From positions 434,001 through 498,000 of the forward strand of contig NIVC01000426.1 in NCBI GenBank assembly GCA_002269645.1: 64,000 nucleotides of DNA, given 5' to 3'. Position numbers and translations under genes: made by a program. The number at the start of each line of letters is the position of its first letter. The first letter of the stretch is position 1. The stretch comes from Macrostomum lignano (Eukaryota). Below are positions 8,874 through 45,200 of this stretch, piece by piece. The notes beneath the pieces are model-generated. The model was not told the origin of the DNA. It saw only the letters and a list, made by a program, of their open reading frames with translations, and made no database searches.

Positions 8874-11800
8874 ATGAGCCGACAGCTGCTGCTGCTGGGC
8901 CTGCTGTTGGCACTGGTGTCCGCCTGCGGCTCCATCGAACGGTCTTCGCCGCCAACTCGGCCACTTGGCCTCGGCTATTCGGACTACCCGGACGGCCGGA
9001 CGGGCCACTTCGGCTCCAGTCACATCCCCATAGCTGGCAGCCTGCCAAGCGATATGGGTTCGGGCAAGCGTTGCCAGCCGATCACTATACCGGTTTGCCA
9101 GGGCATCGGGTATAACTACACTTTCATGCCGAATCACTACAATCACGAGACCCAGGCGGAAGCTGGAATATCCGTAAGCAATGATGCATGTACTGCCTTT
9201 TGAATGCTCTGTGTAGCTCTTTGTAACTGCCATTTGAAGAGTTTGTAGCTCTTTGAAATTGTTCCTCTATGCATTGAATTCCTACCTCTCACTCTATGTT
9301 AGCTTGTCTCGTGTCCACTTCTCACTCTATGGTAACCTGTCTTGTGTCTACCTCTCACTCTATGGTAGCTTGTCTTGTGTCTACCTTTCACTCTATGATA
9401 GCTTGTCTTGTGTCTACCTCTCTATGGTAACCTGTCTTGTGTCTACCTCTCACTCTATGGTAACCTGTCTCGCGTCTACTTTTTACGCTATATACTATTC
9501 TGTCTCGTGTCTACCTTTCCTCGTGTCTCAGTAGTTTGCCTTCAATTTGACTTCGCAATTACCCGCTGTAGTAATTGCTAGATCGAAATCTACAACATTA
9601 TCCCTTTATATACATCGGGGATTTTTACTCCAAATGCAATTTTAATCTCCTTGTTCAAGCTTTCGGAATCATTTGACTTCAATGCAACACAGAATTGACG
9701 GAATGGCCTGTGACTGCCGGCTAAATTGCTATTACGGCATTTTGCATAAGGTAGAGATTATCTAATCCTGCATTCCATTACAAGACTGCATTATCCGAGA
9801 TTTGCATCAGCAAAAGAATAGAACTGGGCTACGAGCTGATGTTGTTTTTAGGCAACAGAAATCCCAGTCAGCTGCAGTGATTGACACATCATCCAGACCG
9901 ATCAAGCATCATCACAGCCCGGCAGCTTGTGCGATCTGACAATTAAAGAAAGAAAAGTTTTATGTTTCACCAGACACTCTGGCCTACTAGCTGTTAATGC
10001 CGCCTTTCTTTCAGAAGATTTTACACTTTCTTGGTGTCCGATTATAAGCAAAATAATCAGGCAGCCCCAAGATTCCTGAGCTTTTGCAGCCAGTGCCAAA
10101 TATAATAATTATTGTTAAGCCTTTTATCGACGGCTTGGTGACTCATCATCAACCGGGGGCCCCAGTTCCCGGTCCTAATTCCTATTAATTTTCTTTCCTC
10201 TTCTCTGCATGTGCATCTCCGCGGCTCCATGGGCGGGAGGCACCTTCGCCGCCGACGTCTGCTCAGCGGGGGGTCCCGCCCCCCCCCCCCACTGCCCCAC
10301 CGGAGTCCTGGGCAACATCTGGGGGAGGGCGGCCTTTCAAGGACCCCCCACCGTCTCAAGTGCCCTCCGTTTCGCTATAGCTTTGCTGTCTGTATATACA
10401 TATGCATAATATTCGTTCGCTCTTTATTAAAAGCAACGTCTGTTCCGTCTCCCAAATTCTGTCGCCAGTTCTCCGTTAGACAGAATTTTCGGGGAATGAA
10501 TGAATGAATAAAAGCAAAGCCCTTCTATGCCGGTTGAAGAGCCCCCCGAAATCACCCTCTGGCAATGCCAACCCCCACCACCCCCCGCTGGCAAGCCCAC
10601 ATGCGCTTAGGGTTACATCATCATTCCTCTGGCATTATCGAGCTGGCGGAGTACTCCAACTCGCCCCTCTAACTCGAAAGTCTCGCTTCGCACCCCTCAG
10701 TCTCTGCTCTGTTTATTATTCTTCTCTATATTCTTAGTGGACAAAGACCCACTGCGTAATAATTGAGTCACGTGATCGACACAGTCGGTCTCTATCTTTT
10801 AGTTGCTTATATAACCCATTAGTAGGACAATTATCTTTTGCATAAAGCTATTGTATTATTGTATTCTATTGTTCAGACTTAACCCGCACATCCGCAAACT
10901 TAAAAGGTTTGATAGCTATCAGAACTTGCTCATCTCACATTCCTTTTATCGCTCCGTTTAGCGATTTAGAGGTACTACTAGAGGGCGATTCAGACACTGA
11001 ATTCGGGGCGATTTAGGCACTGAATTAGGGGCGATTTAGACACTGAATTAGGGGTGATTTAGTCATTGAATTAGGGGCGATTTAGACACTGAATTAGGGG
11101 TGATTCAGGCACTGAATTAGGGGCGATTTAGACGCTGAATTAGGGGGGGTTTAGTCATTGAATTAGGGGCGATTTAGACACTGAATTAGGGGTGATTCAG
11201 GCACTGAATTAGGGGCGATTTAGACGCTGAATTAGGGGGGGTTTAGTCATTGAATTAGGGGCGATTTAGACACTGAATTAGGGGTGTTTCAGGCACTGAA
11301 TTAGGGGTGTTTCAGGCACTGAATTAGAGGAGATTTAGGCACTGAATTCGGAGTGATTTAGACACTAAATTAAAGGAGATTTAGACACTAAATTAGGGGC
11401 GATTTAGGCACTGAATTAGGGGCGATTCAGGCTCTGAATTTGAGGCGATTTAGGCGACTTTGACCTTTTTAGCTTTCGGATTTTTTGTGTAATTTTTTAT
11501 CTCAAAAAAGCAGCAGTTTGCGGAAGCAGAAGCAGCAGATTTCTCTAACCAACAGTCAGCAGCAGAAGTGGCAAAGCTGCGAGGAAGCCAGAGGAAACGA
11601 CAGCCGCAGGGGAGCTCAAGCAGGGGATTTGGGAACTGATTTATTTTCACTACTATATACACGCGCTGCTCGCCACGGCCGGGCCCTAATGCCAATCCGA
11701 TGATTCGCTCCCATCCCCCACATGCCATGCAGCACAAGCTCTGGCCAGGCCCTGAGCAGTATATACAGTATGTATATATAAGATTCGTGTTGGGCGAAGT

Positions 11801-14800
11801 TGCCGCAGCTTACCCCTAGAGACGGGGGGGAGGGCAGCGGGGCGTTCTTCATCCGCTTCCCTCGGAGCTTCTCTATCTCTTTCTTCCTTTCTCTCTCTTT
11901 AGCCTCTGCTGCTCGGGTCGGGTCGGTTGGCCGGGAGGGGGGGACATGCCAAAGCTTTAGAAGCAGATGCAGAGTAGAGATGCAGCATTTTCGCAGGATG
12001 CTGCTGGGGACACTCACTCCCCCACCCCACACCCTGCCCGCCGAACTCAATCAACTCTCTTCGCCCCATCCCTTATAGCTACTCGCTAATAAGGCGTTTG
12101 GCTTATCGAACGAATATTCGCTCACTCTGTCTGCCCGACTCTTCTTCAGTTAGCTTCCTCCGCAACCCCGCAGTCATAAAGCACGCACAATGTCGCAGCT
12201 CCAACACGCTCTTCTTCCTGCTTCTGTCACGCCTTAACATTTGCCCCGCTTCCTGCTTGAGGACCAACTGATTGACTGACTGCTAACTCATTTGAGAAAT
12301 TTTCCCAAACCGAATTAGGCATTGAAATTGTTATTATCGATTGATCGCTACGCTGCGGGTCTTTTTAAGCGTATTGGGGGCATTGATTTTTATCGATTCT
12401 CTGGGTCCCCGCCTGGCAGAATTCCTTCGGGTAGAATTTATCTATTGAATGTTTGTTGATTGGAATCTGGAATTGGAAATTACTGCCCGGCTCTGTATCT
12501 TCTGTTCTGTCCGGTTCTCTGTATCTTCTGTTCTGTCCGGTTCTGTATCTTCTGTTCTGTCCGGTTCTCTGTATCTTCTGTTCTGTCCGGTTCTCTGTAT
12601 CTTCTTTTCCGTCCGGTTCTCTGTATCTTCTTTTCCGTCCGGTTCTCTGTATCTTCTGTTCTGTCCGGTTCTCTGTATCTTCTGTTCTGTCCGGTTCTCT
12701 GTATCTTCTTTTCCGTCCGGTTCTCTGTATCTTCTGTTCTGTCCGGTTCTCTGTATCTTCTTTTCCGTCCGGTTCTCTGTATCTTCTGTTCTGTCCGGTT
12801 CTCTGTATATTTGTTCTGTCCGGTTCTCTGTATCTTCTGTTCTGTCCGGTTCTCTGTATCTTCTTTTCCGTCCGGTTCTCTGTATCTTCTGTTCTGTCCG
12901 GTTCTCTGTATCTTCTTTTCCGTCCGGTTCTCTGTATCTTCTGTTCTGTCCGGTTCTCTGTATCTTTGTTCTGTCCGGTTCTCTGTATCTTCTGTTCTGT
13001 CCGGTTCTCTGTATCTTCTTTTCCGTCCGGTTCTCTGTATCTTCTGTTCTGTCCGGTTCTCTGTATCTTCTTTTCCGTCCGGTTCTCTGTATCTTCTGTT
13101 CTGTCCGGTTCTCTGTATCTTTGTTCTGTCCGGTTCTCTGTATCTTCTGTTCTGTCCGGTTCTCTGTATCTTCTGTTCTGTCCGGTTCTCTGTATCTTCT
13201 TTTCCGTCCGGTTCTCTGTATCTTCTGTTCTGTCCGGTTCTCTGTATCTTCTGTTCTGTCCGGTTCTCTGTATCTTCTGTTCTGTCCGGTTCTCTGTATC
13301 TTCTGTTCTGTCCGGTTCTCTGTATCTTCTGTTCTGTCCGGTTCTGTGTCTTCTGTTCTGTCCGGTTCTCTGTATCTGCTGTTCTGTCCGGTTCTCTGTA
13401 TCTTCTTTTCCGTCTGGTTCTCTGTATCTTCTGTTCTGTCCGGTTCTCTGTATCTGCTGTTCTGTCCGGTTCTCTGTATTTTCTGTTCTGTCCGGTTCTC
13501 TGTATCTTCTTTTCCGTCCGGTTCTCTGTATCTTCTGTTCTGTCCGGTTCTCTGTATCTTCTGTTCTGTCCGGTTCTCTGTATCTTCTGTTCTGTCCGGT
13601 TCTCTGTATCTTCTGTTCTGTCCGGTTCTCTGTATCTTCTGTTCTGTCCGGTTCTCTGTATCTTCTGTTCTGTCCGGTTCTCTGTATCTTCTTTTCCGTC
13701 CGGTTCTCTGTATCTTCTGTTCTGTCCGGTTCTCTGTATCTTCTGTTCTGTCCGGTTCTCTGTATCTTCTGTTCTGTCCGGTTCTCTGTATCTTCTGTTC
13801 TGTCCGGTTCTGCATCTTCTGTTCTGTCCGGTTCTCTGTATCTTCTTTTCCGTCCGGTTCTCTGTATCTTCTGTTCTGTCCGGTTCTCTGTATCTTCTGT
13901 TCTGTCCGGTTCTCTGTATCTTCTTTTCCGTCCGGTTCTCTGTATCTTCTGTTCTGTCTGGTTCTCTGTATCTTCTGTTCTGTCCGGTTCTGTGTATCTT
14001 TTGTTCTGTCTGGTTCTCTGTATCTTCTGTTCTGTCCGTTTCTGCATCTGCTTTTCTGTCCGGTTCTGCATCTTCTGTTCTGTCCGGTTCTGTGTCTTCT
14101 GTTCTGTCCGGTTCTGCATCTTCTGTTCTGTCCGGTTCTGTATCTGCTGTTCTGTTCTGATTGTTAACCTACTTAAATTTCAAAGCAAAGCCCCCCTGCT
14201 TTCTGTACAGGTCCATCAATTCTGGCCACTAATTGAAATTGGCTGCAGCCAAGATCTGCGCTTCTTCCTATGCAGCATCTATGCACCGATTTGCATTCAA
14301 AACTACGACAAACACCTGCCCGTCTGTCGGTCAGTCTGCGAGAGGGCCAGGAGCGGCTGCGCGCCCCTCATGCGGCAATACGGGTTCAGCTGGCCTGAGC
14401 ACATGGACTGCTCCAGACTGCCTGGTAAGCGGTGCTGGTACAGGGTACTCGCATCTGGTACAGGGTACTCGCATCTGGTACAGGGTACTCGCATCTGGTA
14501 CAGGGTACTCGCATCTGGTACAGGGTACTCGCATCTGGTACAGGGTACTCGCATCTGGTACAGGGTACTCGCATCTAGTACAGGGTACTCGCATCTGGTA
14601 CAGGGTACTCGCATCTGGTACAGGGTACTCGCATCTGGTACAGGGTACTCGCATCTGGTACAGGGTACTCACATCTGGTACAGGGTACTCGCATCTGGTA
14701 CAGGGTACTCACATCTGGTACAGGGTACTCGCATCTAGTACAGGGTACTCGCATCTGGTACAGGGTACTCGCATCTGGTACAGGGTACTCGCATCTGGTA

Positions 14801-17800
14801 CAGGGTACTCGCATCTGGTACAGGGTACTCACATCTGGTACAGGGTACTCGCATCTGGTACAGGGTACTCGCATCTGGTACAGGGTACTCGCAGCTGGTA
14901 CAGGGTACCCTCGCATCTGGTACAGAGTAGAAAGTATTAGTATCTTGTACAGATGGAAAGCACTCGATCTCCTAGTAGACGAGCACAGCGGACAGGTACA
15001 AAAATCTAAGAAGGAAGTCGGAATTCGAAGAACTCAGAAAGGAAGGACGCGAGAATCCGCCAGCACGCACGAAAATCCCAGTGAAGAGCCTGAAGCCTCT
15101 CCTCTCCCCGCCTCCGTTCTTCATCATATTCTACTCTCGCTTGCCTCCTTTCAATCATCTCTCAGCCATGCAGCTGGGGGCAGACTTTACTGCAGGTCTC
15201 AGGCCGCACTCACCTGCTAATGCAGCGGTTCAGAGGGGGGAGAGAATCGAGTGCAAGCTCATGGCAAAATGCTCTGCTTGGGCGTGGCCTCGCGGGGAAG
15301 TCGGGATTAAAGAGACACGCTAAAAGATGGCGGCCTCCGCCTCCGAGGGCACGGGGAGGAAAGGAGAGGGTGGGAGGAAGCGAGTCGCATGGCGAAGGGG
15401 CGAGCTTAGATGAAGGCGAGAAAAGCTTTGGCTTTTTAACAGAGGGCGGAGAGAGGAATTGTTGTGCGCTCTCTCTCTGTGTATTTTTTCAATTCGCAAA
15501 TATCCCAAATTCCCTCTAAGCCTAGCCTCAGAGCAGCCTCTCTGTTTGTTCCTCATCATCCCTAAACACGCGAGACAGGCAGGCCGGGATGAGGGAGGGC
15601 GAGGACGCGTGGGATCTCGGGGAAGGTGGGAGCAGCGCGGGCGCCAGGAGGGATGAGAAGGGGAAGCGAGGGCGGAGGGGAAAGTGACAAAAATGAGTTT
15701 GTCACTCTGCCAGCTTTGATGAGGTGGCTGACGGGCAGGCGGGGCAGCTTTGGGGAGGGAAACATCCCATCGAGCCTGTCTAATCCCCGTCATCCTCTCG
15801 TCCGCTTTCAAGCCCGACTTTCGGTAGGCAGGTAGGAAATTAGTTTTGACGAATTGAATGTCAGCGACTGTCAGGACAAGCCGGAACTGACCGACAGGTC
15901 AGTCTGTTGGAGCTGATAAATCACACTTTCATAAATCATGGAAGCTTGGTAAAAGTGACGAGGCAGTTTCGAGTATGAAGGCAGTGAGTATTAAGCAGTG
16001 GCGGACCCAGACTGGGTCAAAGTAGATCAGCTGAACACTGATCTACATTAGAATATTTGCACCTGGCATAAAATTTTAGTGGTAAATAATAATATTTAAA
16101 CAGCACGAGATGTCCGAGCTCACGGGGAGGGGGTCGTTGAAATTCTGTGGCTCATGGGGGGTTGAAATGCCAAAGGATCAATTGAAAGTTGTTGGTAGAC
16201 CGAGCAAAGGTAGATCGAAGGGAGAGTTAGGGTTAAGCCATGGCTTAAAGGGAAGCTTTGATGCCAATGCTCACAGGGGATGCTGATATCTTAGGCTAGA
16301 TAGCTGGACTTCAATGGTGATGATTTTTTGCTTAAAGCATGATTTTCTTTAGGATACTAACAATAGTGACTGTACAAGGTCAAATGCTACTTGTATAGTT
16401 TATTCAAACATTTTCATTCCTTTCTTTGTTGCCTCCCCCAACGGGGGGGGCGGTGATTGCTAGTCCATTATACTAAAATCGTTATCTACATTCTACTATT
16501 AGAAATTGGCACTAACTGAAGAGAAACTAGAATTAGGAAAGGGGCATAGCAGGAAGGCAGGGTAGGGTAGCCATGCCGACCATCCGGCGTGGAGTATGCT
16601 TGAGACTGAGGAGAAAAAAGCGGTAGCCCACGGCGTCTTTCCGCTTCTTCGTCTGCTGCTTCTGCTGCTCCTGCTGCTGAACCTCTTCTGCCCTGGCGCT
16701 GCATTAAAAGCTCTGCACTCAAAATGTTTCCAGGTTGAAGCGGGGAGGGGAAGGGGCGGTTTAAAAATATGAGAAGCCAAAGATGATGCCCGATGATGAC
16801 TAAGAAGCTGAGCCGAAGGAAGGGGCGGGAAGAATTTTAGACTTGAGAGGAAGTAAGAGAGGGGGAGATGAAGAGAGAAAGAAGTTTCTCTACGCACGCA
16901 ATTTTCTCCCGTAGAGCTTGAGTGGGCAAAATTTGGGGAAAGAATTTCCCACCTTTCTCAATTGAGTAGAATCACTCATCCCTTGGCCTTGTCGCGGGGT
17001 TGCCAGGGCGACGGCTCTAGGGGCTATGGCTTCGGGAATGTGGGGAGACTGAAGATGATGAGGCGGGCGGAGGCTGGTCCGGGGCGAGCTCAGGTGAGAG
17101 AGGCGGTGATGTGACGATTTTTTCGATCGATTTTTTGCAGCAATTTTGTCGAACCTCTTCTTCTTCTTCTTACTGCTTATCGACCTTCCTCTCTCCACCC
17201 TCTCTCTCTGTTCCACCCACCTTCTCTTTCTTGTTTCTAGAAATGCTCCGTGCCCGATCCCTATCTCAGCGGACTCACGGCTGCCCGGCTCATTAGCGCG
17301 AATCCTTCCCTCATCCCCCCTGCTGCTCCTCCAGCTTCCCTTGAAATCCCAAACTGCCCCTGCAGGGTGAACACGGAATGAGATCGGCTTACCTTGTGCA
17401 ACCCCCCTCCCCCCGCGGCTCGGGGTCTCTTCCTCTTGCTTGTCTGCCTCTTCGGCGCTTTTTCTATACCTTTCTTCTGGTTTTTTTGCAAGTCTATCGA
17501 TTGAATCCTGCGCAGGCTTGAGGGACCCAGCTACCTGCCGACGGCTCCCAGCTAGAGCACAAAGAGACCTCAAAAACTGGGTAATTCTATCTCAAATCTT
17601 GCTTAGCTTCATCATATAACTGGATTCATATCTCGTTCGGCAATCTTTTCTCTGATTCTCCAATTTTGTTTCATGGAGTCTGGACCTGTCTCTCCATCAA
17701 TCGGGGCTTCTGCTGCTCGTCCCGCTCTTTTTTAGTCGTCTCAAATTCAGTTCGCGAGCGGCCCCTAATGGTTTCGGATCTGGAAATCGGGGGTCGAGTT

Positions 17801-19806
17801 GCTGCTGTTACTGCCGCTAAATGCAGGTCACGTGCTGGCGTATCTGTCAATCTTGATAGATAAAATTAATTTAGTGTAAAAATTTTTAGCCATGTAACTT
17901 ATTTTTCTATAAGACTCAAGTACCGTACTAGTCTACTAACCCGTTGTTAGTAGTATAGAGGGTTTAAATATTCAAATTCGTGTCAAAAAGTTACAGAGTC
18001 CTAGGTTTCGTGTAGGAATTGGATTTTTCTATAGCGCGGATCTCTCTCCATCGAATTTGTCTATGGCTAAATCCCATTCAACGCCATGAGTTCTCTAGTA
18101 GAGCAAACTAAAATGCACCAGCGATGCCACAAATCGATATTCCTATCGGGTCTCCAGCTCATTTCTAAGAAAATCGAGTGTTTCGGCCTACGAATTGTCT
18201 AGCTATACACTTTTTGAAGATACGAGCTTTCCAGCTAGTAAAAGATTCTGTTTTTAGATGTCAAATTTCCAGTTTATTATGAAACTATTCTTGGATGAGA
18301 AATCAATAAATGAATCAATGAAACCCGCAGTATTCGGCGATCCGGACATCCTGTGCATGGACGTCAACAACACGCAGCAGAGCAGCAGCAAGACTCCGGA
18401 GCCGCTGTCCTCCGATCCGACTCTGCCGCCGGCTGATCCGGATTCGCCGTCGTCAACGTTCGGCATTGAATGCGACTGCAAGTGCCGCAAGCCGTTGGTG
18501 ACGCTCACCGAGGCGGATCAGGGCTACTATAATCGGGTGCACACTGGTGGAGTTGACAATTGCGCTCTGCCCTGCGAGGGCGCCTTCTTCGCCGACAGGT
18601 CGCAGCTGGCCACCGTCTGGATGGGCATCTGGTCGATTCTGTGCGCGGCCAGTTCAACCCTGACTGTGCTCACCTTCCTGCTGGACACCAGACGGTTCAG
18701 CTATCCTGAGCGGCCCATCGTGATGATGTCCGCCTGCTACATGATGGTGTCAGCTGGCTACATCCTGCGACTGGCCGTCGGGCGGGATGCCATCGCTTGC
18801 GATGGTCGACTGTTGCGCTACGGCTCCACCGGGCCCTGGTTGTGCACCGTGGTGTTCCTGCTGACCTACTTGTTCGGCATGGCCAGCTGCGTGTGGTGGG
18901 TCATGCTGTGCGTGGCCTGGTTCCTGGCGGCCGGGCTCAAGTGGGGCAGCGAGGCCATCGCCAAATACAGCGAGGTTTGTCGCATCTTATCTGAGTGTGC
19001 TTCTGTGTATCTGAGTGTGTTGCTGTGTATCTGAGGGTGTTGTTGTGTATTTGAGTGTGTTGCTGGGCTCACTAGGTCCATGTAAATAATGGTAATTACA
19101 ATATACAAAACAAAAACAAAACTCCTTCAAACAGGTGTTCCACGGCATTGCCTGGCTCCTGCCCATCGTGCAGTTCATCCTGGCTCTCACCTTCTCATTG
19201 GTTGACGGCGATCCAATATCCGGCATCTGCTCCGTCGGGAACACCAGCCTCACAGCTCTGCAGGTGTTCGTGCTGGCTCCCATGGTGACCTACCTGTTAC
19301 TGGGCAGCGCCTTCCTGCTCACCGGCTTTGTGGCGCTATTCCGCATCCGTTCTGTGATCAAGCAGCAGGCCTGCGCCAAGACCTACAAGCTGGAGAAGCT
19401 GATGATCCGCATCGGGATCTTCTCCATCCTGTACACCCTGCCAGCCTGCGTGGTGATCGCCTGCCATTTCTACGAAGCCCAGCTGCGCGAGGCCTGGCTG
19501 AGAGGCAAAACCTGCCGCTGCCTCGGCCAGAACCAGGCGCCGGCTCCGGAGCCAGAGTACGGCGTGTTCATGCTGCGCCAGTTCATGCAGCTGGCCGTTG
19601 GCATCACCAGCGGTGTGTGGGTCTGGTCTGGCAAGACTCTGCACACTTGGCGCTCGTTTTTCTACCGCCTGTTTTGCTGTCAGCCGCGCGCGATGCACTC
19701 TGCAGATCCGAGGCCGTATTATAAATTCAATGTGGCTCCGGGACACCCGCCTCTGCCGCCGCTGCCGCCGCTGCCACCAATGCCGGGTCACATGTCGCAG
19801 GTGTGA
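8874..19806 (+). CDS. fzd5/8: Frizzled 5/8-class Wnt receptor, ~609 aa; join(8874-9173,14211-14424,18331-18974,19135-19806)
   Basis: Signal peptide MSRQLLLLGLLLALV; CRD CQPITIPVCQGIGYNYTFMPN...EAGIS|VHQFWPLIEIGCS; 7TM with RRFSYPERPI and KLEKLMIRIG; KTLHTW (KTxxxW) and C-terminal SQV as in FZD8. All introns GT-AG with consistent phases (0,1,0); 1830 nt. Confidence 0.95.
9280..9530. repeat. Second, more degenerate array of the same 33-bp unit, in frizzled intron 1
   Basis: TCTCACTCTATGGTAACCTGTCTTGTGTCTACC copies in the same orientation as 8455-8818. Confidence 0.9.
10984..11458. repeat. 23-bp minisatellite GGCGATTTAGACACTGAATTAGG, frizzled intron 1
   Basis: ~20 tandem copies. Confidence 0.95.
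12488..14158. repeat. 26-bp pyrimidine-rich minisatellite GTTCTCTGTATCTTCTGTTCTGTCCG, ~64 copies, frizzled intron 1
   Basis: Stop-free unit explains five overlapping long ORFs; ends ~50 nt before the exon 2 acceptor. Confidence 0.98.
14435..14925. repeat. 20-bp minisatellite CTGGTACAGGGTACTCGCAT, ~24 copies, frizzled intron 2
   Basis: Starts ~10 nt after the GT donor at 14425. Confidence 0.97.
18995..19065. repeat. Short ~20-bp repeat TGTGTATCTGAGTGTGTTGC, frizzled intron 3
   Basis: 3-4 imperfect copies in a 160-nt intron. Confidence 0.7.
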
Positions 19807-21254: not shown

Positions 21255-21480
21255 AACTGGTGATCTGCATGGGAGGTTGGCCCAGCAACTGAGGATCTGG
21301 GAGGCTGGCCCAGCAACTAGGGATCTGGGAGGCTGGCCCAGCAACTGAGAATCTGGGAGGCTGGACCAGCAACTGAGGATCTGGGAGGCTGGACCAGCAA
21401 CTGAGGATCTGGAAGGTTGGCCCAGCAACTGATGATCTGGGAGGCTGGCCCAGCAACTGCGGATCTGGGAGACTGGAAAC
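21255..21480. repeat. 28-bp minisatellite GGAGGCTGGCCCAGCAACTGAGGATCTG
   Basis: ~8 copies; GATCTG at 21294 and 21322. Confidence 0.93.
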
Positions 21481-22034
21481 CAAACTTATGAGGCTGCAAG
21501 CGAATTTGAGCATGAGGAGGGCCTATAATTAAGTATTGCGAAAAAATGAAGAAGCACATTCCTGCTCCATTTTGCACATCATAGCAAAGATTATAATTTT
21601 CAGCAATGTAATAATTTCAGTGCACTTGCTTCATTCACAATTCAACTTTGGCAGCATTTATTGCAATGGTACTTCAGACAAAAAAATCATCTCAAAAACT
21701 AAGCCTGTTGAGCAGAGACATTCGAGTTGTAGATCTCAAACAGTTTCACTGAATATGGAGCTCGCGTTGCAAAGAAATGAAATTCGGCAAATTAACTACA
21801 CGAATGACAACCCATACTACAAATATGCAGTTCCTGAAGACTCTCTTAAACACAGTATAAAATTTGATACAAAGACATCATTTTACAATACTGGCACACA
21901 ATCAGCTGAAGCTTAAAACAAACGCAATCGCTCGTATTTACAATTATGCTTTGATTAAATCTTTTTACTAGTTTATTCTCAGCATTATAACTTTACAAGT
22001 TGTTTTCTAAAATTCACCACCAAAAGGGTAGCAG

Positions 22035-22720
22035 CAGCCACTGAAGGAGCGGGGGGCAGGTCACCACAGCCCTGAAGGAGCGGGGGGCAGGTCACCACAG
22101 CCCTGAAGGAGCGGGGGGCAGGTCACCACAGCCCTGAAGGAGCGGGGGGCAGGTCACAACAGCCCTGAAGGAGCGGGGGGCAGGTCACAACAGCCCTGAA
22201 GGAGCGGGGGGCAGGTCACAACAGCCCTGAAGGAGCGGGGGCAGATCACAGCAGCCCTGAAGGAGCGGGGGGCAGGTCACAACAGCCCTGAAGGAGCGGG
22301 GGGCAGGTCACAACAGCCCTGAAGGAGCGGGGGGCAGGTCACAACAGCCCTGAAGGAGCGGGGGCAGATCACAGCAGCCCTGAAGGAGCGGGGGGCAGGT
22401 CACAACAGCCACTGAAGGAGCGGGGGCAGGGACAGCAGCAGCCACTGAAGCAGCGGGGACAGGGACAGCAGCAGTCACTGAAGGAGCGGGGACAGGGACA
22501 GCAGCAGTCACTGAAGCAGCAGCGACAGGGACAGCAGCAGTCACTGAAGCAGCGGGGACAGGGACAGCAGCAGTCACTGAAGCAGCGGGGACAGGGACAG
22601 CAGCAGTCACTGAAGCAGCGGGGACAGGGACAGCAGCAGTCACTGAAGGAGCGGGGACAGGGACAGCAGCAGTCACTGAAGCAGCGGGGACAGGGACAGC
22701 AGCAGCCACTGAAGCAGCGG
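22035..22720. repeat. Compound minisatellite: 31-bp CCTGAAGGAGCGGGGGGCAGGTCACAACAGC grading into 33-bp GCAGCAGTCACTGAAGCAGCGGGGACAGGGACA
   Basis: Two related unit types meeting near 22430; source of the AAVPVPAASVT ORF. Confidence 0.95.
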
Positions 22721-22796
22721 AGGCCAGTTAATTTGCTAGTTTAGATTGCGTTGTCAAAGCCAGGCACAGAGCAAACGTCAATGCCAGATTTTACCA

Positions 22797-24068
22797 TTAC
22801 AGACGCGATTTATCAACAGAGACGAAGCTGCCTGCCAGTCGGACCGGGCGGCCGCTGATCCAGGCGTAGCTGACCGCGTGCTCCAGCCGCTGCTCGGCCA
22901 ATGCGATTCGACTGGCATCGGCTAGTCGGACAAAGATAAGCATGCCGCAGTTGAGCACCCGCCGAAATTGAGCCCGGACAGTTGGCCGGCCAGCCAGTAG
23001 GTGGCCGAGAGTGGCTGGTCGACCGGCCGCCAGCACCCGGCCAAACAAGGGACAACGGCAGGCGCTGTCGCTTCGCGGTTGAACGGCCAGCTCGACGGCC
23101 AACGGAGCGTCGGTGAGCGGCGAATCGACCCCCGCCACCGACCCAGGCAGCAGCGACCGGCGTATGACGCTTTTCGTGCCCTTGTACGGTTGCCATGACA
23201 ACCGGTCTGCTCTGAGGGCGGGGCGGCTGCGGCTCGGCCGGCCAATCAAGCGCCAAGGCGACCAGACGAGCTCATCTAGCGGCGCTGGGAGACTGAGCCC
23301 TGTGCAGGACTCTCTGGCAACCCGGACAGCTGTCTGAGTTTTCCTGTCAACTGGCGTCTCCGATGCATCTCCGAATTCCTCGTCGTCAAGGATGACGGTC
23401 TCGGCCGAGGCGCGCCTCACCAGCGACAACATCCCGACGGCTTCGCAGTGGGGCGAGCGCCGGGACCGGACCTCGCACTCGTAGGCGTATTGAAGGCGAC
23501 TGCTGCCGCTGGCTCGGTAGGCCGCGGCGGTCAAGAAGTCTGGCAGGTCGCGCAGCTCAGCCAGCTGCAGGCAGAGGCCGCCGGTTTCATTCGCCAGGTG
23601 TCGCATGAAGGTCAAGCTGCAGCAGCTGTCAGCTGACTGCGCAGGCGGGCCGCAGTGCACAGAATAGACGGCGACGCCGAGCTGCTTCAGCTGAGGAACC
23701 GCAGAGGAGTCGTGGCTGACGGGCTGGTCAACGAGGACGAGAGCGCGCGAGCTGCCTTGGCGCCAGGAGATCTTTTCGACCGCCAACTTCAGCAGTTGCT
23801 CGGTGCGGCCCCGTGGCAGAGCGCAGTCGCCTGTACCGGGCAATTGGCTGGTCAAAAACTGAGCCAGGACTTCGGATGCTGCTCCGAGATTCTGGTATCT
23901 AGTGGTGACGATGACTGCTAGTTGACTGTTGGGAATGTCGCCTGATAGGCGAGGAAAAATTTTTGCAACCTCGACAAGAATTCGGTTGTCAAGGGCGCAT
24001 CCGTAGGAGTCGAATAGCTGGATTGTATTGAATGCAAACACAAGGTCTACTGGCTTGGCTGCTGCCAT
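22797..24068 (-). CDS. Uncharacterised 423-aa protein: degenerate vWA domain plus ET/HRT-type GIY-YIG-like C-terminal domain; CDS intronless
   Basis: Non-repetitive GC-rich ORF. vWA-like motifs PVDLVFAF, SWRQGSSRALVLV, LGVAVYSV, LANETGG; C-terminal WSPWRLIG...VELAV...GMLIFVR...AEQRL...SYAW. Possible 5'UTR exon with GTAAG donor at 24224 (-). Confidence 0.75.
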   Translation of the reverse strand: MAAAKPVDLVFAFNTIQLFDSYGCALDNRILVEVAKIFPRLSGDIPNSQLAVIVTTRYQNLGAASEVLAQFLTSQLPGTGDCALPRGRTEQLLKLAVEKISWRQGSSRALVLVDQPVSHDSSAVPQLKQLGVAVYSVHCGPPAQSADSCCSLTFMRHLANETGGLCLQLAELRDLPDFLTAAAYRASGSSRLQYAYECEVRSRRSPHCEAVGMLSLVRRASAETVILDDEEFGDASETPVDRKTQTAVRVARESCTGLSLPAPLDELVWSPWRLIGRPSRSRPALRADRLSWQPYKGTKSVIRRSLLPGSVAGVDSPLTDAPLAVELAVQPRSDSACRCPLFGRVLAAGRPATLGHLLAGRPTVRAQFRRVLNCGMLIFVRLADASRIALAEQRLEHAVSYAWISGRPVRLAGSFVSVDKSRL

Positions 24069-25109
24069 TTGCTTATCGGAATTGACCGCCTGTCTGCATC
24101 GATTCGGTAAGCTTTGAATAGGCTTTTATAATTAACTGGGGGGGGGGGCTGCCGTTCAGCGTGCGGCGACACGCGGTCACATGAGCTATTTTTAGGCATT
24201 ACCAGTTTGCTAATTGGTCCTTACCTGCCGAGATGTGAAACTCTACAGCAAGTCACGACACGTCGTTGTATTCTATTTTTAGATCAATTATTAGTGTTGT
24301 AATCATATTTGAGATTTTTCAATTTTTGTTCTAAGAATTATTGGGTAAATTTTATGCAGATAGTTTTATTTTGACAAGTTAGCTATAGGTCTCTTTTTTA
24401 AGCAGAATAATTTTTTGCACAAAGTCACTTGAAACTCGTGTGGAGTTTACAAAATTGATTGTTAAATTATGGAACAAAAATGATTTTTAAGCAATGAAAA
24501 CTGCCAGGTTTAATAGAGAAAACTGTTTACCTCTAGTCTGATTTTAGTAACCCTCACTTTGTTTGATTCGTGGCATAGAAAGCATTCTATAATTTTCTAT
24601 AGCACTATTTATTTATAGCAGCGTTTAAGCTTCAGTATGCCTTCCGCCCAAATATTGGTGTTATTCAGCGGGGCTGTCTTCAAAAATTGCAGCTGTCCAA
24701 CTGTTTCTGCGGTCCTGCAGGGGATCCAACCCATTAAGGGCAGCAGGGCATAGACGGTTAGCGTCTCCAGATGCACTGCACCTCTCGCGGGCATATTAAT
24801 TTACAGCGTCGATGGACTCTTATTTTATTGCTTATAATTAATCAAGGACCGGCCGCTTATGTACAGTGTACATGCATGCACACAAAATTCTTCAAGAAGC
24901 GGAAAAGAGCCCCATATCGGGAAACCGATATATCGATCAATTGCCTTCTTCTGCCAAGTAAGCTAGCTTCGCTTTTTGACAATGGTTTTAAATTTGCACT
25001 ATGCATGCCAGGACCACTATTGTAAAACAGAATGTAAAACTCAAATATCGTGTAATTTTTAAGGGCTAATTCTTAGAAAAAAATACAACTGCGGAGATAG
25101 GAAAAAATG

Positions 25110-26199: not shown

Positions 26200-34486
<8,287 letters not shown>

Positions 34487-36331: not shown

Positions 36332-36769
36332 ATGGGTCGCAGATCTGGAGGAGGAGGCGGTGGCGGCGGCTTCATGCGCAGGCCGGCCGCCCCGCCACTG
36401 GCCGCTCCGCGGCCCAGCAACAATGTGCCAGCCGCTAGGCCGCCGGCACAGCCCGCCCCGGCTGCATCGGCCCCCTCGGGCGGCGGCGGCTTCCTGTCGA
36501 ACATGGCATCCACAGCCGGCGGAGTGGCCATCGGGCACACCATCGGACACGCCATCACTGGCAGCTTCGGCGGCAGCGGCGGAGCTGTCGAATCTGCCGC
36601 TGACCCGGGTGCTGCCCAGCAGCAGCAGCAGCAGCAGCCCTGCCAATACGAGATGGAGCAGCTAATGAACTGCAGCGTTAACCAGCAGGATATTAGCCTG
36701 TGCGCCGGCTATAGCGAGATTCTTAAACAATGCCGACAGCGCTTCGGCACCGGGGCTCAGTGGCAGTGA
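36332..36769 (+). CDS. CHCHD2: CHCHD2/CHCHD10-family mitochondrial protein, 145 aa, intronless
   Basis: Arg/Pro/Ala N-terminus, GGGFLSNMASTAGGVAIGHTIGHAITGSFGG helix, twin CX9C (PCQYEMEQLMNC, LCAGYSEILKQC). Confidence 0.93.
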   Translation: MGRRSGGGGGGGGFMRRPAAPPLAAPRPSNNVPAARPPAQPAPAASAPSGGGGFLSNMASTAGGVAIGHTIGHAITGSFGGSGGAVESAADPGAAQQQQQQQPCQYEMEQLMNCSVNQQDISLCAGYSEILKQCRQRFGTGAQWQ

Positions 36770-42277: not shown

Positions 42278-45200
42278 ATGGCTAGCAAAGACGCTCAGCA
42301 ACAGCAGCTGTGCTATTTTTATCAGCGTGGCAACTGTCGCCATGGCAACCAGTGCCGATTCTTGCACGCTCGTCCCCCGGCACCGCTTGCAGCAGCAGCA
42401 GAATCATCAGTGGAAGGAGGTCCCGCCGTTGCCCGGGTAACCATCAGCACAGTCTGCTGGTATTTGAAACGCGACGGAGTCTGTCCCCATGGCGACCGGT
42501 GCCGGTTCAGCCACGACCTGAGCAGCGCCGTCAGGCAGGACAGCTCGAAGAGTTCTGCCAAGGCGCAGACGCTCCAAGCGTGCGTGTTCTACCAGCGCGG
42601 CAGTTGCAAGCGCGGCCAGAACTGCTGGTATCGGCATATTGATCCGGCGGGCGCCGCCCCGTTGGCTCAGGTGAGCAGCTTTATCTTCTACTCGGCAGAT
42701 AAACTGCTAGCTCGAAATTGCACGCATTCGAAAACGAGTAAAATTTACAGCTCGTAAGCTTGAAACTTCACAATGGGAATACCGTTACTTTACAAACGTT
42801 TAATTATGAAACTTAATTAGCTCGAATCTTCATCAGCTCAAAACTCCATTAGCTCAAAACTTCATTAGCTCAAACCTCCATTAGCTCAAAACTCCATTAG
42901 CTCAAAACTTCATTAGCTCAAAACTCCATTAGCTCAAAACTCCATTAGCTCAAAACTCCATTAGCTCAAAACTCCATTAGCTCAAACCTCCATTAGCTCA
43001 AAACTCCATTAGCTCAAAACTTCATTAGCTCAAAACTCCATTAGCTCAAAACTCCATTAGCTCAAAACTCCATTAGCTCAAAACTCCATTAGCTCAAACC
43101 TTCATTAGCTCAAAACTCCATTAGCTCAAAACTCCATTAGCTCAAAACTCCATTAGCTCAAAACTCTATTAGCTCAAAACTCCATTAGCTCAAAACTCCA
43201 TTAGCTCAAAACTCTATTAGCTCAAAACTCCATTAGCTCAAACCTTCATTAGCTCAAAACTCCATTAGCTCAAACCTTCATCAGCTCAAAACTCCATTAG
43301 CTCAAACCTTCATTAGCTCAAACCTTCATTAGCTCGAACCTTCATTAGCTCAAACCTTCATTAGCTCAAAACTCTATTAGCTCAAACCTTCATTAGCTCA
43401 AAACGCCATCAACTCAAAACTTAATTAGCTCAAACCTTCATTAGCTCAAAACTCAATTAGCTCAAAACTTCATTAGCTCAAACCTTCATTAGCTCAAACC
43501 TTCATTAGCTCAAACCTTCATCAGCTCAAACCTTCATTAGCTCAAACCTTCATTAGCTCAAACCTTCATTAGCTCAAACCTTCATCAGCTCAAACCTTCA
43601 TTAGCTCAAACCTTCATTAGCTCAAAACTCCATTAGCTCAAACCTTCATTAGCTCAAAACTCCATTAGCTCAAACCTTCATTAGCTCAAAACTCCATTAG
43701 CTCAAAACTCCATTAGCTCAAACCTTCATTAGCTCAAACCTTCATTAGCTCAAAACTCCATCAACTCAAAACTCAATTAGCTCAAAACTTCATTAGCTCA
43801 AACCTTCATTAGCTCAAAACTCCATTAGCTCAAACCTTCATCAGCTCAAAACTCCATTAGCTCAAAACTCCATTAGCTCGAACCTTCATTAGCTCAAACC
43901 TTCATTAGCTCAAAACTCCATTAGCTCAAACCTTCATTAGCTCAAAACGCCATCAACTCAAAACTTAATTAGCTCAAAACTTCATTAGCTCAAACCTTCA
44001 TTAGCTCAAAACTCAATTAGCTCAAAACTTCATTAGCTCAAAACTTCATTAGCTCAAACCTTCATTAGCTCAAACCTTCATTAGCTCAAAACTCCATCAG
44101 CTCAAACCTTCATTAGCTCAAACCTTCATTAGCTCAAAACTCCATCAGCTCAAACCTTCATTAGCTCAAAACTTCATTAGCTCAAAACTCCATTAGCTCA
44201 AACCTTCATTAGCTCAAAACTCCATTAGCTCAAACCTTCATTAGCTCAAAACTTCATTAGCTCAAAACTCCATTAGCTCAAAACTCCATTAGCTCAAAAC
44301 TCCATTAGCTCAAAACTCCATTAGCTCAAACCTTCATTAGCTCAAAACTCCATTAGCTCAAACCTTCATCAGCTCAAAACTCCATTAGCTCAAACCTTCA
44401 TTAGCTCGAACCTTCATTAGCTCAAACCTTCATTAGCTCAAAACTCCATTAGCTCAAACCTTCATTAGCTCAAAACGCCATCAACTCAAAACTTAATTAG
44501 CTCAAACCTTCATTAGCTCAAAACTCAATTAGCTCAAAACTTCATTAGCTCAAACCTTCATTAGCTCAAACCTTCATTAGCTCAAACCTTCATCAGCTCA
44601 AACCTTCATTAGCTCAAACCTTCATTAGCTCAAAACTCCATTAGCTCAAACCTTCATTAGCTCAAACCTTCATTAGCTCAAAACTCCATTAGCTCAAACC
44701 TTCATTAGCTCAAAACTCCATCAACTCAAAACTTAATTAGCTCAAACCTTCATTAGCTCAAAACTCCATTAGCTCAAAACTCCATTAGCTCAAACCTTCA
44801 TTAGCTCAAACCTTCATTAGCTCAAAACTCCATCAACTCAAAACTCAATTAGCTCAAAACTTCATTAGCTCAAACCTTCATTAGCTCAAAACTCAATTAG
44901 CTAAAAACTTCATTAGCTCAAAACTTCATTAGCTCAAACCTTCATTAGCTCAAACCTTCATTAGCTCAAAACTCCATCAGCTCAAACCTTCATTAGCTCA
45001 AACCTTCATTAGCTCAAAACTCCATCAGCTCAAACCTTCATTAGCTCAAAACTTCATTAGCTCAAAACTCCATTAGCTCAAACCTTCATTAGCTCAAAAC
45101 TTCATTAGCTCAAAACTCCATTAGCTCAAACCTTCATTAGCTCAAAACTCCATTAGTTTAAAACTTCATTAGCTCAAAACTCCATTAGCTCAAAACTCCA

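Follow-up and report, generated by a model that had tools for sequence, protein, structure and literature searches.

We analysed a 64,000-nucleotide stretch of the flatworm Macrostomum lignano genome (GCA_002269645.1, contig NIVC01000426.1, positions 434,001 to 498,000 of the forward strand; hereafter the window), in which a complete intronless coding sequence of 423 amino acids plus a TAA stop codon (22797..24068, reverse strand, starting with ATG; protein P0001) is a genuine M. lignano gene. As far as sequence comparison goes, this gene belongs to an undescribed invertebrate (spiralian) family of multi-copy proteins that join a domain of von Willebrand factor A (vWA) type to a C-terminal module resembling that of the plant EFFECTOR OF TRANSCRIPTION (ET/HRT) proteins, an identification of gene and family in which we have high confidence. 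In the window protein the vWA half has lost its metal ion-dependent adhesion site (MIDAS) and much of what is conserved in its relatives, whereas the C-terminal module remains as conserved as in the M. lignano paralogues. The explanation as a whole, this asymmetric decay together with a function borne by the C-terminal module, is the one toward which we lean, if only slightly.

Relatives were collected by an exhaustive HMMER search and aligned (n = 86 sequences). The window protein recovers the M. lignano paralogues (P0003 at E = 1.6e-50, the next paralogue at E = 1.8e-31), beyond which many proteins align over its residues 5-250, and a 10-sequence family profile matches it at E = 9.6e-105. 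Members were found in gastropods, bivalves, the brachiopod Lingula, one nemertean, M. lignano and unnamed environmental eukaryotes; all are annotated in databases as uncharacterized or VWFA domain-containing only, and some already carry automatic PF19239 matches. The genes form tandem arrays in molluscs, with at least seven copies on Haliotis scaffolds, some of them in tandem ~7 kb apart. The shared architecture consists of the vWA domain (motifs FSFDTTGSM, AHGDY, GGxDxPECYELVL, and LVLIGDAxPHE), a helical extension marked by MAICYRE...YE.EVR.R, a long linker of basic, low-complexity sequence, rich in Lys, Arg, Ser, Thr, and Pro, that resembles a nuclear localization signal, and a C-terminal module of ~150 residues, hereafter the C-module (W-S-x-W, ALYE[IV][AG]VQ, RAQ, GC.VFVRR, and YDYAW). 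Pfam matches among the 86 members are confined to VWA_4 (82 members), VWA (63 members), and PF19239 (19 members at E ≤ 0.01). No paper describing an animal family with a vWA domain and an ET-type module was found in the literature on PF19239, on vWA with GIY-YIG in molluscs, or under the gene model name.

Four segments, all on the reverse strand, can be delimited in the window protein: a degenerate vWA domain (residues ~5-172, 23553..24056) whose fold is kept in the model described below, the helical extension (residues 175-224, 23397..23546) with its motif ..A.Y R....Y E.EVR.R partly kept, a short, acidic, low-confidence linker (residues 225-262, 23283..23396) in place of the long basic linker of the relatives, and the C-module (residues 263-423, 22800..23282), homologous in the family alignment to the PF19239 module of the relatives. 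The MIDAS is intact in the relatives (DxTxS...T...D). In the window protein, the loop that reads DTTGS in the family is a dead NTIQL (residues 14-18, 24015..24029), and, overall, the ligands D14, T16, S18, T79, and D115 of the family correspond to N14, I16, L18, T79, and Q115, so that four of the five, each near-invariant in the family, are lost; the last of these changes lies in the beta4 loop (LVLVDQ versus LVLIGD in the family). Moreover, the AHGDYCD and N..DWR blocks are deleted. Of the 101 columns of the N-terminal half that are conserved in at least 80% of family members, the window protein keeps 41, compared to 77 to 80 in the M. lignano paralogues; against members from outside the flatworms it averages 28% identity there, compared to 43 to 46% for the paralogues. 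The C-module gives the opposite picture: 13 of 18 conserved columns are kept, compared to 12 to 15 in the paralogues, mean identity to non-flatworm members is 22% compared to 20 to 25%, and the invariant or near-invariant residues (W269, W272, E326, V329, Q330, R381, Y401, A402, and W403) are all present. This asymmetry argues that constraint no longer acts on the metal site and partner surface of the vWA half, whereas the tail module is still under it.

An earlier interpretation made from the letters of this DNA, the sequence-only reading, had taken the protein for a fusion of a vWA domain with an ET/HRT GIY-YIG-like domain, both apparently inactivated. The motifs that it quoted are all in place (WSPWRLIG at residues 269-276, PLAVELAV at 322-329, RVLNCGMLIFVR at 370-381, and AEQRL...SYAW at 391-403), the region of residues 269-410 corresponding to 22839-23264, close to the 22830-23270 that it had given, and they occupy the family's most conserved columns, which with the E values cited above places them far beyond chance. 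The architecture is likewise borne out by the Pfam matches of the relatives and by structural comparison, even though the window protein itself matches neither model. As for inactivation, it applies to the vWA half (D14N, T16I, S18L, and D115Q) and not to the C-module, which is as conserved as in the paralogues. With regard to the GIY and YIG tyrosines and the catalytic Arg, which it took to be lost, the GIY position is occupied by V325 (Y59/V10/F9 in the family), the YIG position varies across the family (H/Y/F/C), and the family C-module has no conserved Arg in its first helix and no conserved Glu or Asn in its last. Y325V and D400S, the latter replacing the Asp of YDYAW by Ser, do not reflect inactivation specific to this copy, being common to every flatworm paralogue and to two unnamed relatives. 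The catalytic Glu thought to be retained, E392 of AEQRL, lies in a column that is not conserved in the family.

A single-sequence AlphaFold model was unusable (predicted local distance difference test [pLDDT] score, 32.6). With the 86-sequence alignment as input, AlphaFold2 returned a model with a pLDDT of 83.2 in which the majority of 10-residue blocks in the C-module have mean values above 85, the vWA fold of the window protein in this model being driven by the alignment of its relatives. Foldseek searches of the PDB with the full-length model retrieved TFIIH p44/Ssl1, which is intracellular, and the von Willebrand factor A1 and integrin I domains, which are extracellular (E about 3e-07, probability 1.00), as the best matches; they cover residues ~5-200, with template modeling scores to the target of 0.6 to 0.68 and 11 to 18% sequence identity. 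The window protein differs from these three in its destroyed MIDAS, and it has no PDB match by sequence. As neither a signal peptide nor an extracellular context is present, a matrix or adhesion role is unlikely. Among viral models (BFVD), the best matches were VWFA proteins of phages and ariadne-like RING/RBR proteins of giant viruses, of the mimivirus R811 type (E about 3e-11, 260 to 278 aligned columns), in alignments that take in both the vWA domain and the helical extension; among them are RING/RBR proteins of Megavirus and Yasminevirus and a VWFA protein of a crAss-like phage. Two scallop members of the family (Mizuhopecten P0089 and P0090) have been automatically named "Ariadne-like RING finger protein R811" after mimivirus. 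These matches and this naming indicate that the vWA subtype of the family, with its helical extension, is shared with large DNA viruses and phages. The RING/RBR domain has no counterpart in the family, and the viral proteins have no C-module.

The nature of the C-module can be approached through the relatives. PF19239 (GIY_YIG_domain), which we take to be the Pfam entry derived from the GIY-YIG-like domain of plant ET proteins, has no fuller description in the database than "GIY-YIG domain-containing protein." Apart from it, the C-module of the relatives matches no Pfam family. Scanned as isolated modules, the family consensus (28.5 bits) and the members from Haliotis (30.1), Gigantopelta (31.1), and Lingula (21.7) all exceed its gathering score of 21.4 bits. 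The significant matches span profile positions ~104-162; positions ~54-103 are unmatched, and the segment from W-S-P-W to ALYEVAVQ aligns with positions 2-53 weakly and in Gigantopelta only (E = 0.039), so that the match, whose first part is weak and seen in one member, would be colinear, starting with the W..W segment and finishing at ..DYAW. The core of the C-module is predicted to consist of strands 323-330 and 339-346, helices 354-358 and 362-373, strand 377-384, and helix 391-398. A strand-strand-helix-helix-strand-helix succession is that of the GIY-YIG core, as in I-TevI and UvrC, and the predicted order therefore fits this core, in order alone and in a model. The catalytic Tyr, Tyr, Arg, Glu, and Asn of canonical GIY-YIG nucleases of the PF01541 type (the N-terminal domain of UvrC, I-TevI, and Slx1), whose beta-beta-alpha-alpha-beta-alpha order the predicted core would match, have no conserved counterparts in the family C-module, where instead the first core strand conserves a Glu and the third an Arg. 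Altogether, the alignments lend support to an ET-type assignment of the C-module, whereas by sequence its membership in the canonical GIY-YIG superfamily comes out negative.

In its ancestral form, the family protein combined a vWA domain carrying a MIDAS with a helical extension, a disordered linker of basic character, and a C-module of ~150 residues homologous to PF19239. We propose that the family acts as a nuclear adaptor in which a MIDAS-dependent, protein-binding vWA domain, structurally nearest to the intracellular p44 type, is linked by the basic segment to an ET-type module that probably contacts nucleic acid. Following duplication within the Macrostomum lineage, the window copy was stripped of its basic linker, of two conserved blocks, and of four of the five MIDAS ligands, and its C-module stayed as conserved as in the MIDAS-intact paralogues. 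The selected function of this copy would then lie in the C-module and would most likely be nucleic acid or chromatin binding; binding is preferred to canonical GIY-YIG cleavage because E326 and R381 are conserved instead of the Tyr/Tyr/Arg/Glu/Asn set and because flatworms are devoid of the usual Tyr and Asp. The vWA half may persist only as a metal-independent scaffold, and a protein reaching the target of the C-module without MIDAS-dependent contacts could be a modulator or a competitor of the intact paralogues. This mechanism, from the selected tail module to the possible interference with the paralogues, is put forward tentatively.

Several results weigh against this proposal. Taken alone, the window protein matches no Pfam family at E ≤ 10, including the vWA models and PF19239, its isolated C-module does not match PF19239 at the same threshold, and its membership in these Pfam families is by transitive homology only, its own score being below the thresholds. 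Two canonical GIY-YIG profiles were built, one from UvrC and one from phage I-TevI-type domains plus UvrC, the latter with G4, Y6, Y17, G19, R27, and E75 invariant and N87 nearly invariant; hhalign comparison of the C-module with them gave probabilities of 0.5% and 0.3%, respectively, which leaves the GIY-YIG nuclease relationship of the sequence-only reading without support, and means that DNA binding or nicking is deduced only from the name of the Pfam family and from the plant literature. The full-length Foldseek searches of the PDB and BFVD gave vWA matches only among the 50 matches listed. The ratio of nonsynonymous to synonymous substitution rates (dN/dS) between the two genomic copies described below is 0.50, a value resting on 12 substitutions and not significantly different from 1 (P = 0.32), and the transcript evidence is not assignable to the window copy rather than to its 99% identical twin. 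Finally, the competitor or modulator role is speculation. Further searches were negative as well: no PF01541 match for the C-module at E ≤ 10, no real match of the C-module or whole-family profiles to PDB sequences, only weak chance matches of the window protein in NCBIfam and PDB sequences (those to nitrilase and phage terminase were rejected as not meaningful), only the protein itself in a word-index homologue search, and only three proteins, with no plant ET sequence among them, in such a search with the C-module profile.

A different view of the tail is that its similarity to PF19239 is real, the GIY-YIG label nominal, and the C-module a protein-protein or small-ligand binding domain rather than a nucleic acid domain. 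The two hhalign values and the absence of a PDB sequence match to the family profile are in line with this possibility, as is the composition of the invariant residues, mostly Trp and Tyr with one Glu and one Arg. We nevertheless regard it as unlikely, since the predicted secondary structure order fits the GIY-YIG core, the long, basic linker of the relatives, resembling a nuclear localization signal, adjoins the module, and complementation evidence has been published for the plant domain (PMC6585611). It is somewhat less probable still, in our opinion, that the protein is an active DNA-nicking enzyme with a noncanonical site involving, e.g., E326 and R381, the vWA half serving as a tether and MIDAS loss altering only its targeting. 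All the invariant polar residues of the C-module are kept, conservation of the module equals that of the paralogues, and the plant ET domain has been reported to nick DNA, the ET2 domain replacing the UvrC nicking domain (PMC6585611). However, across the flatworm clade the GIY-position Tyr is a Val and the Asp of YDYAW a Ser, the last helix has no conserved Glu/Asn pair, and the family shows no profile similarity to the catalytic domains in which Y6, Y17, R27, and E75 are invariant and N87 is nearly so.

The constraint acting on the gene was assessed with a second version of the locus. P0002 (hypothetical protein BOX15_Mlig028846g1) is 99% identical to the window protein and found on two other contigs in the same neighborhood, between the ERGIC/ERV gene and the Frizzled gene, in keeping with the known redundancy of the M. 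lignano assembly (PMC5730564). The two copies differ at 12 of 1,272 nt (7 nonsynonymous and 5 synonymous changes) without any indel in the open reading frame (ORF), compared to 14 substitutions and 5 indels in the 627 nt upstream, i.e., a divergence of 0.94% in the ORF versus 2.2% upstream (P = 0.03). The 12 sites that tell the copies apart are 23877, 23871, 23834, 23822, 23796, 23577, 23335, 23142, 23028, 22891, 22879, and 22848. All of these upstream changes lie in 442 nt, none of them in the remaining 185-nt block (24134..24318, reverse strand), which is 100% identical in both copies (P about 0.003). This block stands immediately upstream of a TATA-like element, TATAAAAG (24123..24130, reverse strand), which in both copies precedes the ATG by 62 nt, and the two together are likely to form a candidate core promoter, as inferred from these alignments. 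As the GenBank gene models of this assembly were built from RNA-seq transcripts only (PMC5730564), the existence of the model Mlig028846g1 on the near-identical copy implies that at least one of the two copies is transcribed. These data bear on the suggestion that the ORF, as a duplicate in decay, is on its way to becoming a pseudogene, open by chance and transcribed as noise. The massive loss of conserved vWA positions, the two deletions, the disappearance of the basic linker, a dN/dS not significantly different from 1, and the lack of an orthologue from another species in databases would all agree with decay. Even so, we consider it very unlikely: the frame of 1,272 nt is still open in both sequenced versions after ~55% amino acid divergence from the paralogues, the C-module keeps its conserved positions at the rate of functional-looking paralogues, indels number zero in the ORF versus five in the flank, the upstream block is conserved, and an RNA-seq-derived gene model exists.

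With respect to origin, the sequence-only reading had pointed to an intronless coding sequence in an intron-rich region as a hint of retro- or lateral origin. The observation is accurate, as the ORF is uninterrupted, the neighboring Frizzled gene is split into many exons, and M. lignano genes have a mean of 4.9 introns (PMC5730564); the explanation is not supported. In a distance tree, the window protein, a fast-evolving paralogue whose branch is two to three times as long as theirs, groups as sister to the rest of the M. lignano paralogues and is nested among spiralian sequences. Introns are missing from all M. lignano paralogues, P0034 translating directly, whereas the genes of Haliotis and Lingula are spliced; the intron loss is thus old and shared, not specific to the window gene. 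Given this splicing in Haliotis and Lingula, retroposition at an early date, prior to the divergence of the M. lignano paralogues, is conceivable. A repeat search around the ORF found minisatellites only, with no terminal inverted repeat, long terminal repeat, target-site duplication, or poly(A) remnant, so the marks of a processed retrogene are missing, there being no poly(A) tract, no flanking direct repeats, and no spliced paralogue in this genome. Recent acquisition by lateral transfer or retro-insertion, with a plant, alga, bacterium, or virus as the donor, for which one could invoke the lack of introns, the GC island formed by the ORF (63% GC versus ~40% in the flanks), and the occurrence of the same vWA type in phage and giant-virus proteins, is negligibly probable given this phylogenetic position, the intronless paralogues of a family spliced in Haliotis and Lingula, the absence of insertion marks, the same synteny in both copies, and a GC content at third codon positions of 0.70, which resembles the 0.76 to 0.80 of the neighboring Frizzled exons. 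The sequence-only reading had also evoked stress or conflict systems; a resemblance to known prokaryotic conflict systems was rejected, as neither PADLOC models of anti-phage defence proteins (no match at E ≤ 1 for the window protein and four relatives) nor PHROGs gave any match. In the paralogue P0003 (Mlig013221, L005 8001-9443), the genomic ORF runs uninterrupted for 480 amino acids and the annotated product has 463; the annotated intron consists of 51 nt of in-frame (KPVT)n repeat and looks like an annotation or assembly artifact.

Compared to the plant proteins, the family shows clear differences. Plant ET proteins are defined by C-terminal cysteine-rich zinc- and DNA-binding repeats; none is present in the window protein, which ends ~20 residues past the module, and none was found in any of the 86 members, whose Pfam matches are to vWA families and PF19239 only. 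In the animal family the module sits at the C terminus, with a vWA domain as its fusion partner, and ET genes have been described as plant-specific (PMC6585611). A signature Y-E-[LIV]-[GA]-V may be common to the two, going by the ET motifs quoted in the sequence-only reading. If the assignment is true, a domain held to be the plant-specific hallmark of ET proteins also occurs in animals, fused to vWA and in dozens of copies per mollusc genome, which would place the ET module in an evolutionary setting and offer another system for experiments on it. As a natural separation-of-function allele, with its MIDAS dead and its tail module intact, the window gene could be used to ask for the role of each half in a species for which RNA interference and transgenesis are available (PMC5730564). 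A broader scenario, which we consider improbable, would see the ET-type module as an old eukaryotic DNA-binding or -nicking domain that is not plant-specific, its spiralian fusion to vWA as a tandem-expanded family for genome surveillance or the response to DNA damage or foreign DNA, and the window gene as a MIDAS-dead regulator or decoy.

The modules of the family also occur in other combinations. Exon 1 of the Lingula member P0081 (L006 8001-8933) encodes, on the same vWA type, a third module of ~100 residues (FKTGRGFY..TKPE...FVQSTSYNR...FLYEVD) without a Pfam match; it is N-terminal in Lingula, which also carries the ET-like module, and C-terminal in coral and environmental proteins (P0120-P0127 and P0143), where it takes the place of the ET-like module. 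The latter is found as short stand-alone proteins in Logan/ENA assemblies (P0151, 160 amino acids; P0152, 194 amino acids), with GVYELAVQ or GIYELAVQ and DFAW motifs, the nearest relative being a Mytilus californianus family member. P0012 and P0030, from Logan DRR639838 (L003) and an ENA metagenome scaffold (L004), are GC-rich full-length members with a flatworm-type SYAWNSGR that group beside the flatworm clade.

On the contig, the ORF lies between the ERGIC/ERV gene and the multi-exon Frizzled gene and is flanked on both sides by minisatellite arrays. Past its 3' end, minisatellites with units of 31 to 33 nt and 28 nt (22030-22727 and 21270-21476) begin ~70 nt beyond the stop codon and give rise to long mechanical ORFs that are not genes, e.g., 22308-22709 with an AAVPVPAASVT repeat; the two genomic copies differ in the repeat-variant makeup of the array. 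ORFs that overlap the gene in other frames (22813-23256, 22922-23245, and others) were rejected as by-products of GC-rich coding sequence. The Frizzled receptor gene (~8900-19800, forward strand) has exons for the cysteine-rich domain near 9000-9200 and 14200-14500 and exons for the seven-transmembrane domain at 18258-19034 and 19135-19806, its introns being packed with minisatellites that create artifactual ORFs of 400 to 760 amino acids. Probable coding exons were further noted for an ERGIC/ERV-type protein (32412-32954), for a Gly/Ala/Pro-rich protein with a CHCH-like Cys motif at its end (36332-36769), and for a protein with repeated CCCH zinc finger motifs (42278-42757).

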